From Prasinococcaceae sp. CCMP 1430 (lineage: Eukaryota; Plantae; Prasinodermophyta), in NCBI GenBank assembly GCA_013416795.1, contig RQSC01000015.1, forward strand, positions 229,696 through 293,695: a stretch of 64,000 nt of DNA. Direction: 5' to 3'. Shown here in pieces: positions 3 to 28,584 of this stretch; position 1 is the first letter of the stretch; every line of letters begins with the position of its first letter. A program made the translations under genes and the position numbers. The notes under the pieces are model-generated. The model was not told where the DNA came from. It did no database searches and was given only the letters and a program-made list of their open reading frames with translations.

Positions 3-518
3 GGGGATGGCCGTGAGCCGAGCGGCGGCGGTGCCATGCGCTGGCAGTCAGGCAGTGGCGTGGAGAGCGTGCTACTTAAGCTCTCGTTTGGCGTTGGCGG
101 CTGCGGCCTCATCCTGCGCCGCCAGACCGCCGCGCGCATCGGCGTGGAGAGCGCAATCGAGGCGAGCGGGGTGGTGAGCGGCGCGGGCAGTGAGAGGGCG
201 CGCATGGCGCGAATCGGGCAGCCGCTGCCCGAGACCAACCGGTCGCGCGATGCAGAGCAAGGCGGCGTGAGTGCGCCCCCAGGCGTGGGCGACGAGGACG
301 TCTTCTCGACGCGCCTCGCGGCGGTCGAGTTCAAGGGCGCGACGATGCGCGGCGTGCGTGCGCTGGTGCACAAGGGGGAGCTCCCGCAGGATATCGAGCT
401 CGCCGAGGCCGCCGGAGGTGCGGCATGCGCGCAGCTCCTCGACGGGGGCACGCTCCTGTGCCTCGACGTGCCCGGGGATCGGGTGTCAATTTCGCGCTTG
501 GATAAATACTTCACGTAG
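3..518 (+). CDS. 3' end of an unknown protein (5' part outside window); weak resemblance to a degenerate retropepsin-like aspartyl protease fold
   Basis: Open frame from the window start to TAG at 516-518, convergent with COG1. GxxxLILxxxxAxRIG and a terminal LDVPGDRVSI are reminiscent of retropepsin-like domains, but there is no catalytic DTG. Confidence 0.35.
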   Translation, partial: GDGREPSGGGAMRWQSGSGVESVLLKLSFGVGGCGLILRRQTAARIGVESAIEASGVVSGAGSERARMARIGQPLPETNRSRDAEQGGVSAPPGVGDEDVFSTRLAAVEFKGATMRGVRALVHKGELPQDIELAEAAGGAACAQLLDGGTLLCLDVPGDRVSISRLDKYFT

Positions 519-20786: not shown

Positions 20787-20912
20787 GAATCGCGCCACTC
20801 ACGTTGCGTCGCTGCTGGGCATTCAATGTACTGTAGACTAGTACTACTGCTACCCTGTACAAAAGCAATTGTGTTACATACATGTAAGATACGATACATG
20901 TGGGTCCGTCTC

Positions 20913-22546
20913 TCAGGGGTCAACATGCTGGCGCAAGTGCTGCTCGATGGCACTGTAGTACTGCTCTCCGCCGATGAAGGGCAGGTTGTTGTGGTCCCCG
21001 CGCGGTATTGTCACGAAGCGCTTCGGCTCATTTGATGCCTCAAAGAGCCTCCTGCCGACGTCGATGGGCACGATATTGTCGTGCGGGCCGTGCAGAAACA
21101 GCAGGGGCGCTTCCACCTGCGAACATATTGGGGGGTGGGGGGTGAGCCATGTCAGCACGCGTCGCCGGAGGCGTGGTGACGGAGCGGTCGAGCGACGAGG
21201 CCAAGGGCGAAGAGGTGAGCGCCGAATGAGCAGCCACGCTCGCACGCGCGCTGCATTTTGCGAGGCATGTCGGCGAGGGGAGGGCGGGCGTGGGGCAGGT
21301 GCGGGGCATCGTGAGAGTAATCCCCGTTGTGTTGGTCGTGTTGCTTCCCGACTGTCGTCCACATAACTGTGCTATGGCGAGCTGCCCCTGCCGACGGCTT
21401 TGGAAGGCTCCGCGAGTAAGCTCGCATCTCGGCCTCGGCGCACGAGGCGCCTCGCACGCCGGCGGTGGGGCGCGGCCCTCGCGGGCTGGCACTCTCTGCC
21501 TGCTGGCCCGGGGAATTTCGCCCAGTGCTTCTCTGTTCGTTCTCATGCGCGGCCGCCCAGCTCGTCTCCCGGAGAGAGAGCGTCGGGCGCCAGGCCGTCT
21601 GTGCACCGATGGTGTGCCTTCTCGATGCCCCGGGTCCCACAGACTACCCATTTGCTGCCGTCCCCCTCCTACCGCACACCACACAGCAGCTAGCGCGCGC
21701 GCGCGTTCGGCGCTCCATAGGAGCGGCCGAGCGGAGCACACAAGGTCGCGACCCGCTCTCGCACCCGAGCGCAGACCGCCGCGCTCTCGACACCCGCCAT
21801 CGGCGGGTCGCATGCTGGCATGGCTCAGTGCGAGGACGCACCTTATTGATCTTGCCCAGGCTGTCCCACTTGTCCCTCAGCAGCAACTTCAAGCATGGTT
21901 TGAGGAAGGGGTAGATGCTCGCGGCGACCTCGGTGATTGAGGTGAGCGCAGCGTTCAGGATGAGTGCGTCGACGCCGCCCGGGCCCTCCTCCTCGGCGAG
22001 CGCCACACTCACGCAGGTGCCGATGGACTCGCCCAGCAGCACGATCTTCTCGGGCCTCTTGGTCTCGCGCAGCCACTTGAGCGCAGCCCGCGAGTCCGCG
22101 CGCATGCCCGCCTCGGTCGGCTCGCCCTCCGAGCCGCCGTAGCCGCGGTAGTCGACGAGGCAGACTGCCACGCCGTGGAGTTGGCGCAGCTGCAGCGCCC
22201 ACTGCGCGCGATCCGCGCGTGAGCCCGCGTTGCCGTGGAACAGGAGCATGGCCGTCTTCTCGCGCGACTTTGCGGTTTCCGGCGTGACGAACCCTCTGGC
22301 ACCCTCCTGTGCGGCCCAGTACCAGAGCTTGATGCGCACGCCGTCCTCGGTCACAACCTCCACGTCCTCAATCTCGTTGTACGGCGCCTTCAGGCGCTCG
22401 GGCGGCGGGGGGATGGTGCCTGCCTGCGGGAAGTACATGATCTTCCGCTGAAAGACGGCCAGTGCCGCCACGAGCGTCACGCCGAGCGCAGCCGCCCCAA
22501 TGCTGGCCTTGACGGCGACGCCCGCGAGCGCACCTGCAACCCCCAT
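20913..22546 (-). CDS. BEM46/ABHD13-like alpha/beta hydrolase, about 302 aa; exons 22546-21842 and 21116-20913
   Basis: N-terminal TM, FQRKIMYFP, FHGNAG, DYRGYGGSEGEPTEAG, nucleophile GESIG, HGPHDNIVP and GDHNN. A 725-nt GT-AG intron at 21117-21841 has a branch GCTGAC at about 21156. Further in-frame ATGs lie upstream, to 22744. Confidence 0.88.
21302..21632 (-). ncRNA. RMRP: RNase MRP RNA, intronic and sense to the host BEM46/ABHD13 gene
   Basis: P1 is CGGGGCAUCG (21632-21623) pairing with CGAUGCCCCG (21311-21302). P3 is CGGUGC/GCACUG with an ACAGAC internal loop. CR-I GAAAUUCCCCG (21519-21509) pairs with CR-V ACAACGGGGAUUACUCUC (21330-21313) to form P4. P8 is GGCA-GAGAG-UGCC (21500-21488), the MRP-diagnostic GARAR loop. 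P9 is GCCC-GCGA-GGGC and CR-IV is AGUUA. Confidence 0.9.
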
Positions 22547-26261: not shown

Positions 26262-26885
26262 ATGTCGGGCGAGATGAGCCTGGGGAACGACGCGCCGGGC
26301 GCGGCGGTCGCGGGCGCCGACGCGGNNNNNNNNNNNNNNNNNNNNNNNNNNNNNNNNNNNNNNNNNNNNNNNNNNNNNNNNNNNNNNNNNNNNNNNNNNN
26401 NNNNNNNNNNNNNNNNNNNNNNNNNNNNNNNNNNNNNNNNNNNNNNNNNNNNNNNNNNNNNNNNNNNNNNNNNNNNNNNNNNNNNNNNNNNNNNNNNNNN
26501 NNNNNNNNNNNNNNNNNNNNNNNNNNNNNNNNNNNNNNNNNNNNNNNNNNNNNNNNNNNNNNNNNNNNNNNNNNNNNNNNNNNNNNNNNNNNNNNNNNNN
26601 NNNNNNNNNNNNNNNNNNNNNNNNNNNNNNNNNNNNNNNNNNNNNNNNNNNNNNNNNNNNNNNNNNNNNNNNNNNNNNNNNNNNNNNNNNNNNNNNNNNN
26701 NNNNNNNNNNNNNNNNNNNNNNNNNNNNNNNNNNNNNNNNNNNNNNNNNNNNNNNNNNNNNNNNNNNNNNNNNNNNNNNNNNNNNNNNNNNNNNNNNNNN
26801 NNNNNNNNNNNNNNNNNNNNNNNNNNNNNNNNNNNNNNNNNNNNNNNNNNNNNNNNNNNNNNNNNNNNNNNNNNNNNNNNNNNNN

Positions 26886-26971
<86 letters not shown>

Positions 26972-28584
26972 CACACACATGTACACACGCGCGAGCACGC
27001 GTACACGCGCGCGCGCGGCGCCGTGCCCCGCCCACCAGGGCCCAGCGGCTGCGGCGCGCCGCTGACTCGATCCGTCGCCCGGCAGTGACGACCACCTCCA
27101 ATTCGAAGGAGGCCATCGACATCCTGCGCACGCGCCCCGACGACTTCGACGTCGTGCTGAGCGACGTGTACATGCCCGACATCAACGGCTTCAAGCTGCT
27201 GGAGATCATCGGGCTCGAGATGGACATCCCCGTGATCATGATGAGCAGCGCGGGCGACACACAGATCGTGATGGAGGGCATCACGCACGGCGCCGTTGAC
27301 TACCTGCTCAAGCCCGTGCGCATCGAAGAGCTGCGCAACATCTGGCAGCACGTGGTGCGACGCCACCAGAACCAGCAGCGCAAGATCACCGGCGAAGAGG
27401 AGGGCGGCGGCTCGCGGCGCAGGGACAGGGACAGGGACGCGCCGTCGAACAAGAAGCAGCGCGTGGTGTGGAACGTCGAGCTCCACCAGAAGTTCGTCAA
27501 CGCCGTCAACGCGCTTGGCATCGACAAGGCCGTGCCGAAGCGCATCCTCGACCTCATGCGCGTCCAGGGGCTCACACGCGAGAACGTTGCCTCCCACCTG
27601 CAGAAGTACCGCCTGTACCTCAAGCGCATCGCGCTGCAGCAGGCCGCGGTTGGGGACGCCGGCGGCGGGCAACAGCCGCAGCAGCCGCAGGACCAGGCGC
27701 CGCAGGCGCAGCAGCAGCAGCAGGCGCAGCAGCAGCAGCAGCAGTCCATTCCGATGGTCGACAACGCGATCGTTGACAACCGTCCGCAGCCGGGGGGCTC
27801 GAGCCTGGTGGGAAGCGCCTTGGTAGGCGGACCGGGTCAGGCCGGCGTCGGGGGCACATTCATGCGGGCGGGCGGACCGGTCGGTGACGCGGCCGGGCTC
27901 GGTGGTCCGTCTCTGGGAGGCGACGCGGTGGGCGGCGGCGCAATGCAGATGCAGAGCGGCGGCGGCATGTCCGGCTCGAACCCCCAGCTCTGGGGACACA
28001 CGGGCAGCTTCAACAGCAACGGTTCGGGGCAGCAGCCAGGCGCGCCCCTGGACCGCATGGGGCCCGGAGTCACAGAAGCGCCGAACCCGTTCGGAGGCAT
28101 GGGCGGCCAGGGAGCCGGCCCAGTGCCTGGTGGCCACAACCCTTTCGCCACGGAGCCCCCCGCCGCCGACATGCAGCTGCCCGGTCCGGGCTGGGGTGGC
28201 GCGGTCAACCAGCACGACGTAGCCACCGCGGCAGCGGCGCAGGGTCCGATGCAGGGCGGGGGGATGCCCATGCCGGGCGGCATGCAGGGCATGCAGGGGA
28301 TACAGGGCATGCAAGGCATGCCGGGCGGGATGCAGGGCATGCAGGGCGGGATGCAGGGTGGGATGCAGGGTGTTGGAGGGCCCATCTCCTTGCAAGGTGA
28401 CCCTTCCGGGTTCGACCCCAACCTCCTAGGAACCAGCCCGCGCACCGACAACGACATGTTTTCGATGCTCCTTGACGGTGCAGGGCCCACCGGCGGCGTC
28501 GCCAACAATCAGGGGAGCTTCTCCAATGGCGTCAACAACAGCATGCAGGGTGGCGGCCTCCCTGGCACGTCGCAGGGCTTCTAG
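26262..28584 (+). CDS. Type-B response regulator (receiver + GARP/Myb DNA-binding domain + Q/G-rich tail); exon 1 from ATG 26262 runs into the gap; last exon 27086-28584
   Basis: Receiver motifs [30 protein letters not shown] and [27 protein letters not shown] motif [16 protein letters not shown]...[18 protein letters not shown]. Acceptor GGCAG at 27085 with branch GCTGAC at 27061. Confidence 0.92.
26326..26885. other. Assembly gap (560 N)
   Basis: N run. It probably hides the start of the receiver domain and the 5' part of the ARR-B intron. Confidence 0.99.
26886..26979 (+). repeat. (CA)n microsatellite abutting the gap, intronic
   Basis: More than 40 uninterrupted CA units. Confidence 0.97.
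28249..28371 (+). repeat. Coding minisatellite (GGC ATG CAG-type) giving MQG repeats in the ARR-B tail
   Basis: [41 protein letters not shown]. Confidence 0.85.

Follow-up and report, generated by a model that had tools for sequence, protein, structure and literature searches.

A gene for RNase MRP RNA in the sense orientation within a hydrolase-gene intron of a prasinodermophyte alga

In a window of 64,000 nucleotides (nt) from contig RQSC01000015.1 of Prasinococcaceae sp. CCMP 1430 (assembly GCA_013416795.1), which is the whole stretch of DNA analyzed here, we identified what is almost certainly a real gene for RNase MRP RNA, an ordinary member of its family, lying in the sense orientation within the one visible intron of a minus-strand alpha/beta-hydrolase gene. 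Textbooks describe RNase MRP RNA as a transcript of RNA polymerase III (Pol III), and we consider it quite probable that in this alga it is matured from the intron of its host instead. What is new is the organization of the gene (sense, in an intron, devoid of Pol III signals, and also kept in a second species) rather than the RNA family, and the kind itself is already known from arthropod RNase P RNA, with a brief mention of an MRP RNA case in a red alga. What the RNA is, where it lies and on which strand, that the arrangement is conserved, and that Pol III signals are absent were all established by computation. Coordinates follow the numbering of the window throughout, and both the host gene and the RNA are read from its minus strand (table 1).

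Identity and fold of the RNA

Scanned in sensitive mode with the Rfam covariance model (CM) RNase_MRP (RF00030), whose curated gathering cut-off is 50 bits, positions 20900-22000 yield a minus-strand match at 21305-21629 (58.8 bits, E 1.2e-15) that spans model positions 2-266 of 266 and is not truncated, the runner-up matches being noise (E >3). When the models of clan CL00002 (RNase P/MRP) compete, RNase_MRP is the only one kept, to the exclusion of the RNaseP model (RF00009). A first-pass annotation, made without database searches, had placed an MRP RNA gene at 21302-21632 and proposed a check of this kind; the gene passes the curated threshold, and the coordinates it had been given turn out to be the exact ends of the 10-bp P1 helix. 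The motifs named by that annotation (P1, the P3 loop, conserved regions CR-I and CR-V, the GARAR loop of P8, the GNRA loop of P9, and CR-IV) are likewise all found, on the minus strand, a strand it had left unstated. In Rfam gathering mode, a scan of the whole 64-kb window returns no matches, and the same mode applied to the 751-nt slice 21100-21850 recovers the RF00030 match. The gene thus passes the Rfam threshold and is lost to speed filters only in the longer search, which explains why it could be described as hidden.

Folded without constraints, the RNA recovers P1, P8, and P9 in its minimum free energy structure (-147.9 kcal/mol, z = -2.6, with no shuffled sequence as stable). The two blocks of the P4 pseudoknot, CR-I (GAAAnUCCCCGG) and CR-V (GGGGnUUA), are both present and are paired by RNAalifold. 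When 24 diverse MRP RNAs were aligned (alignment A2) and analyzed with this program, P1, P4, and P8 were found de novo, with 5-14 double-sided changes per pair of P1, and columns 146/418, which belong to P4, hold G-C in 18 sequences and U-A in three, including the window and its orthologue on contig L001 (presented below), a compensatory change. The P8 hairpin with its GAGAG loop is invariant in all 24 aligned RNAs, and its 13-mer occurs a single time in the window. The proximal stem of P3 and its ACAGACG loop are aligned by the CM at high posterior probability, the distal part of P3 being a lineage-specific insertion of 62 nt outside the model; the helix-internal loop-helix domain of P3 is the binding site of Pop6/Pop7, that is, Rpp20/25. 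Compared with the RF00030 family at large (human RMRP, yeast NME1, plant MRP), the RNA of the window is the same in P1/P2, the P3 loop, P4, the GARAR loop of P8, the GNRA loop of P9, and CR-IV, but it is long (331 nt), carries the 62-nt P3 insertion and an expanded P12, and has U-A in P4 where most members have G-C.

Two features of the CM match speak against this assignment, namely that its score is just 9 bits over the threshold with a composition bias of 20 bits, and that P2, with its two non-canonical pairs, and the P12 region align poorly to the model. The modest score is accounted for by the 62-nt P3 insertion, the poorly aligned P12, and the two non-canonical pairs of P2. Since MRP and P RNAs have P1-P4 and CR-I/IV/V in common, and since GC-rich sequence raises CM scores, as the bias of 20 bits attests, the match might in principle stem from a GC-rich structure arisen by chance, or from nuclear RNase P RNA. 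We hold this to be extremely improbable, because the MRP model is the one kept within its clan, at an E value on the order of 1e-15, because the RNA is conserved at an orthologous locus, and because the GARAR loop of P8, invariant in the aligned homologues, is specific to MRP RNA and has been used as its diagnostic (PMC4287351).

The host gene, its intron, and the orthologous locus

The host is an alpha/beta hydrolase whose first exon matches Pfam Abhydrolase_1 (E 6.5e-15) and positions 3-130 of the Hydrolase_4 profile, and whose second exon matches positions 191-233 of the latter; the two thus cover consecutive parts of one Pfam domain. Its start codon is uncertain, position 22546 being the Met of the gene-caller protein P0001, an open reading frame (ORF) that runs through the intron. 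The predicted splice junction is supported by a 51%-identical homologue on contig L005, which is devoid of the intron and in which the stretches matching the two exons meet (nt 787/788) precisely at that junction. The first-pass annotation had described a protein-coding intron of 725 nt, and both the location and the length are borne out (from GTGCGT at 21841 to the CAG ending at 21117), with the RNA on the sense strand of the host at intron nt 210-540, which leaves flanks of 209 nt (5') and 185 nt (3'). It had also seen no convincing ORF in this segment, and the overlapping ORFs of the intron are indeed ruled out as coding, for gaps of 1, 4, 5, and 8 columns against L001 break any frame.

A protein search with exon 1 retrieved two orthologues of the host, P0002 (60% identical) and P0003 (51%). 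The former is encoded on marine Logan and TARA contigs (L001-L004), where an intron is found at the host position and where the gene caller read through it too. Within this orthologous intron, RF00030 matches the host strand at 59.0 bits (L001, 1451-1799) and 60.7 bits (L004, 1550-1898). In the nucleotide alignment of the window with L001 (alignment A1), identity reaches 80% in the RNA, compared with 71% in both exons and about 60% in both intron flanks, which makes the RNA the most constrained element of the locus, and the block of conservation begins and ends at the ends of P1. In a separate comparison, exon 2 is 70% identical to its L001 counterpart. Between the two sequences, compensatory changes from C-G to G-C have occurred in P1 as well as in the 3' hairpin that lies between P2 and CR-V (table 1).

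These data bear on the idea that the window holds a decaying or redundant MRP copy, the functional gene being elsewhere in the genome. The search covered one 64-kb window, and a CM score of 59 bits falls short of the 80-147 bits of most environmental MRP RNAs; yet the RNA is the best-conserved nucleotide segment of a locus whose host proteins are only about 60% identical, the motifs of the catalytic core are all intact, the changes in stems are compensatory, and the reduced score is explained by P3 and P12 insertions also present in the orthologue. A decaying copy therefore appears very unlikely to us.

Just outside the RNA, 8 nt directly 5' of P1 (GUGGGnCC) are conserved between the window and L001. 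The latter also has an extra 7-bp helix (GGCGGUG-CACCGCC, at 1433-1448 / 1803-1809) that flanks P1 over a 5-nt bulge, and of which only about 3 bp are left in the window (21633-21642); this helix may be a processing stem or a relic. Elsewhere in the window, a neighbouring DHX15/Prp43 helicase has its best named relatives across streptophytes and chlorophytes (71-75% identity), a spread that points to a green alga of deep-branching position. GC content is 64-74% outside positions ~26300-26880, where it is 0; judging by its composition, we take this segment, which is followed by an (AC)47 microsatellite (26886-26979), for a presumed assembly gap rather than for biology.

Table 1. Features of the RNase MRP RNA, its host gene, and the intron, in window coordinates
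Feature	Position	Strand	Description
RNase MRP RNA	21302..21632	-	331 nt, from P1 outer end to P1 outer end; RF00030 match; bounds coincide with the conservation block of alignment A1
P1 helix	21632-21623 (CGGGGCAUCG) with 21311-21302 (CGAUGCCCCG)	-	10 Watson-Crick pairs
P3 internal loop ACAGACG	21602-21596	-	aligned to model ACAuACG
CR-I GAAAUUCCCCGG	21519-21508	-	5' strand of P4 pseudoknot
P8 hairpin GGCA-GAGAG-UGCC	21500-21488	-	GARAR loop, MRP-specific signature
P9 hairpin GCCC-GCGA-GGGC	21486-21475	-	GNRA loop
CR-IV ACAGUUAUG	21370-21362	-	placed by CM alignment and sequence
3' hairpin between P2 and CR-V	21352-21335	-	stem GUCG/CGAC; GUGG/CCAC in L001
CR-V ACAACGGGGAUUAC	21330-21317	-	3' strand of P4
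Host exon 1	21842..22546	-	alpha/beta hydrolase; GESIG nucleophile motif; C-terminal ...GKINK at 21842
Spliceosomal intron	21117..21841	-	725 nt, phase 0; GTGCGT (at 21841)...TTCGCAG (CAG ending at 21117)
Host exon 2	20913..21116	-	starts VEAPLLFLHG at 21116; catalytic Asp and His motifs; stop codon 20913-20915
Intron-end "zipper", 5' strand	21809..21826	-	intron nt 16-33; core GAGCCAUG
Intron-end "zipper", 3' strand	21144..21161	-	intron nt 681-698; contains branch-site-like CUGAC (21155-21151)

Transcription signals and proposed maturation

In type-3 Pol III genes, a TATA element is located about 25-30 nt upstream of the RNA, a proximal or upstream sequence element (PSE/USE) is also found upstream, and a terminator of four or more T follows right after the RNA. 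On the sense strand, the 725-nt intron is free of both TATA and runs of three or more T, and the 468 nt lying upstream of the RNA are likewise free of TATA, as judged by an animal/plant-type consensus which may not be that of this lineage. The first T4 downstream is met 438 nt past the 3' end of the RNA, in the 3' untranslated region (UTR) of the host beyond its stop codon. In L001, no T run follows the RNA within the intron, and the upstream flank has diverged between the two sequences except for the 8 nt that adjoin P1, with no conserved promoter block visible. In this regard, the gene differs from animal MRP genes, which are free-standing Pol III units (PMC4287351), in that it is intronic and has neither TATA, nor upstream element, nor T-run.

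A genuine MRP gene could nonetheless be nested in the intron as an independent unit, under an unrecognized Pol III or Pol II promoter of its own. Such an arrangement would be in line with MRP RNA being transcribed by Pol III in every animal examined (PMC4287351) and with the case of Ostreococcus tauri, whose Ot-MRP, detected in this green alga with the Rfam model used here for the window, was described as intergenic, uncapped, abundant by northern blot, and followed by a T-stretch, and was read as a Pol III transcript (PMC7671301); moreover, the promoter motifs of the present lineage may differ from those sought, so that failure to see them is weak evidence. Against it stand the lack of any T run or TATA in the intervals given above, flanks that diverge between the two species save a few bases by P1, a sense orientation that is conserved in the orthologue, and the existence of other algal MRP RNAs that, demonstrably or apparently, are introns in their entirety. 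Weighing the two sides, we find an independent unit unlikely.

We favor instead the reading in which the MRP RNA is without a transcription unit of its own and is probably made by RNA polymerase II (Pol II) together with its host, then released by splicing, debranching, and exonuclease trimming to P1. Pol II would transcribe the RNA as part of the host pre-mRNA, and the intron would be spliced out, possibly with the aid of a conserved helix formed by intron nt 16-33 and the branch-site region. After debranching of the lariat, a 5'-3' exonuclease of the Rat1/Xrn2 type would remove the 209 nt upstream and a 3'-5' exonuclease of the exosome type the 185 nt downstream, until both are stopped by the 10-bp P1 and its bound Pop/Rpp proteins, whose genes are located outside the window. 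The resulting ribonucleoprotein (RNP) would then do the usual work of RNase MRP, that is, cleavage of pre-rRNA in internal transcribed spacer 1 (ITS1). In this pathway, the dependence on Pol II, the nucleases, and the exact mature ends are what we infer.

The helix invoked for splicing is a putative "zipper" between the two ends of the intron, whose strands, read by eye, pair at 17 of 18 positions, the single mismatch being the A of the CUGAC. In L001, its 8-bp core (GAGCCAUG paired with CAUGGCUC) is unchanged in both sequence and relative placement, and TGACATGGCTC has been kept while the intron around it diverged. However, 234 of 5000 shuffles (~5%) yield an 8-bp complement by chance, so that the helix taken alone is suggestive only; if formed, it would join the 5' splice site and the branch site around the 331-nt structured insert.

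Several points weigh against maturation from the host intron. The locus is known from DNA sequence alone, the RNA of ~330 nt being a prediction, and the absent TATA, USE, and T-run amount to negative, and as such weak, evidence. A tRNA scan of the window finds none, so the window offers no internal Pol III comparator. The search for MRP genes covered this window, and a separate, independently transcribed copy may exist elsewhere. A mid-intron RNA needs about 200 nt to be trimmed on each side, whereas in the one demonstrated case, L083 (described below), the RNA fills the intron. Finally, the arrangement is documented in two species only. Homologues of the host are without MRP in Pedinophyceae sp. 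YPF-701 (L114) and on marine contig L115, which indicates that the association of MRP with this host is narrow, and the hydrolase host gene is found at none of the 108 metagenome loci recovered with a CR-I/P8 pattern.

The proposed pathway has counterparts in known systems. Intronic small nucleolar RNAs (snoRNAs) are released from spliced introns and trimmed by exonucleases, a pathway that has long been known. Like intron-encoded box C/D and H/ACA snoRNAs, the RNA of the window would be a non-coding RNA of ribosome biogenesis carried on the sense strand and, as proposed here, trimmed to a protein-protected terminal stem; snoRNAs, however, are guide RNAs of 60-150 nt, whereas the RNA of the window is a 331-nt ribozyme-type molecule with a pseudoknotted core. 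A second counterpart is the RNase P RNA of insects and crustaceans, which is intronic in these animals, MRP RNA being left to Pol III (PMC4287351). Both RNAs belong to the P/MRP clan, are devoid of Pol III signals, and lie in sense within an intron that belongs to a Pol II "recipient" gene, at some distance from its ends, but the present one is an MRP RNA, in a green alga, and rests on sequence data, and the two cases are clearly independent events. In Drosophila, Rat1/Xrn2 trims the 5' end of the intronic RNase P RNA and the exosome its 3' end, while Rpp proteins protect the RNA (PMC6797745), and by analogy this would be the best mechanistic model for the RNA of the window. As for MRP RNA itself, an intronic copy is reported in a single sentence for the red alga Cyanidioschyzon merolae, which has 39 introns (bioRxiv 10.1101/2025.12.01.691491); this preprint gives neither host gene nor architecture, and homology of the arrangement with that of the window cannot be judged. 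Beyond it, our literature search, which covered mostly open papers and may have missed a prior description, retrieved no intron-borne MRP RNA.

MRP RNAs as introns in environmental sequences

Scanning metagenomes with a pattern made of CR-I and P8 retrieved 108 loci with 110 MRP copies, from which 37 non-redundant representatives (among L006-L113), all of them RF00030 matches (51-147 bits), had their flanks tabulated from the ends of the CM match. An AG/GT is found within 11 nt upstream of the RNA, at a distance of 2-9 nt, in 21 of the 37, when the background in the same loci is 2.4% (binomial P ~6e-25, computed on sequences that are not phylogenetically independent), and a pyrimidine-AG follows the RNA in all of these 21 within 37 nt, and in 19 of them within 26 nt. 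In these 21 environmental genes, the RNA is thus apparently the whole of a GT-AG intron. In several groups, P1 is formed by the 5' splice site and a 3' strand that includes a branch-like CUGAC, the A of which looks bulged. By contrast, only 21 of the 110 copies have a T4 at most 40 nt from their 3' end, and a Pol III-like T run is seen in a minority (L021, L036, L063, L103).

For contig L083, the excision of such an intron could be documented. RF00030 matches its nt 84-344 (128 bits) inside a 273-nt GT-AG intron (nt 81-353, plus strand), and two contigs from the same Joint Genome Institute (JGI) sample series, L116 and L117, match L083 at 100% upstream and 98% downstream while lacking exactly nt 81-353, with a spliced junction that reads ...GAACGCAG joined to GTGCTCGG.... 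The MRP RNA of L083 is therefore co-extensive with a spliced intron, which is located in the 5' UTR of an Endonuclease V gene (Pfam 6e-41), about 20 nt upstream of its ATG; the best named relatives of this Endonuclease V are haptophytes. The same layout is found with compensatory P1 changes on L118 (77% nucleotide identity to L083); L008 belongs to the same set of contigs. An attribution of the "GUGGGGCACCGCC" group to Micromonas proved wrong, as the Endonuclease V that hosts it has its closest named relatives among haptophytes. When ten stop-free stretches beside environmental MRP copies were submitted to Pfam, only the Endonuclease V of L083 and a sub-threshold GDSL lipase were returned, stop-free length in GC-rich DNA not being counted as coding evidence.

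Four divergent lineages of lower GC (L060, L016, L012, and L085; GC 0.42-0.56) have a snoZ159/U59 box C/D snoRNA (52-80 bits) 300-450 nt upstream of the MRP RNA on the same strand, and L060 (700-1600, plus strand) has a SNORD33-like snoRNA downstream of it as well, which suggests a host transcript for both snoRNA and MRP RNA. At these four loci, the RNA is closely preceded by AG/GTAAGG and closely followed by CUGAC, a pyrimidine tract, and UUUUAG. The T-stretch of these environmental relatives of Ot-MRP, whose contigs may or may not come from Ostreococcus, may be the polypyrimidine tract of an intron, which bears on the intergenic Pol III reading published for the MRP gene of O. tauri.

Some further arrangements were encountered in this survey. 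Tandem MRP-introns separated by short repeated "exons" occur on L071, L079, and L108 (2-3 copies, ~460-470 nt apart) and on L049 (three copies, ~535-580 nt apart), all three copies of L071 scoring 122-129 bits; these arrays may represent a dedicated multi-intron host gene. On L040 and L059, AG/GC (GCACGA, GCAAGG) replaces AG/GT at the donor position, and these may be GC-AG MRP-introns. In an AT-rich lineage (L028:555-1305 and L070:180-1004, both minus strand), at least three tandem tRNA-Sec genes come after the MRP gene on its strand.

Taken together with the locus of the window, the survey suggests that marine algae commonly carry their MRP RNA in introns, in at least two architectures. It is conceivable, and we put it forward as a tentative reading, that this is a widespread and possibly old algal mode, and that in many lineages the debranched intron, minus a 3' tail of at most 26 nt, would itself be the RNA. 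In these whole-intron lineages, the 5' splice site and the branch-site region (CUGAC) would supply the strands of P1, and the alga of the window would represent a second architecture, with the RNA in mid-intron and a separate conserved helix joining the intron ends. If this were true, the dosage of MRP RNA in these organisms would be tied both to splicing and to the Pol II genes that act as hosts, and calls of intergenic Pol III genes in the literature, as for Ostreococcus, may need to be re-examined.

The locus would in this regard exemplify, for MRP RNA, the very switch to a Pol II intron that papers on arthropods stress did not occur in animals. From a practical standpoint, genome-scale annotation with Rfam probably misses this gene, and filters that demand Pol III signals would discard it. 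From an evolutionary standpoint, it would serve as an independent natural experiment in the assembly of a large catalytic RNP from an intron, and would offer a possible reason for keeping particular introns.

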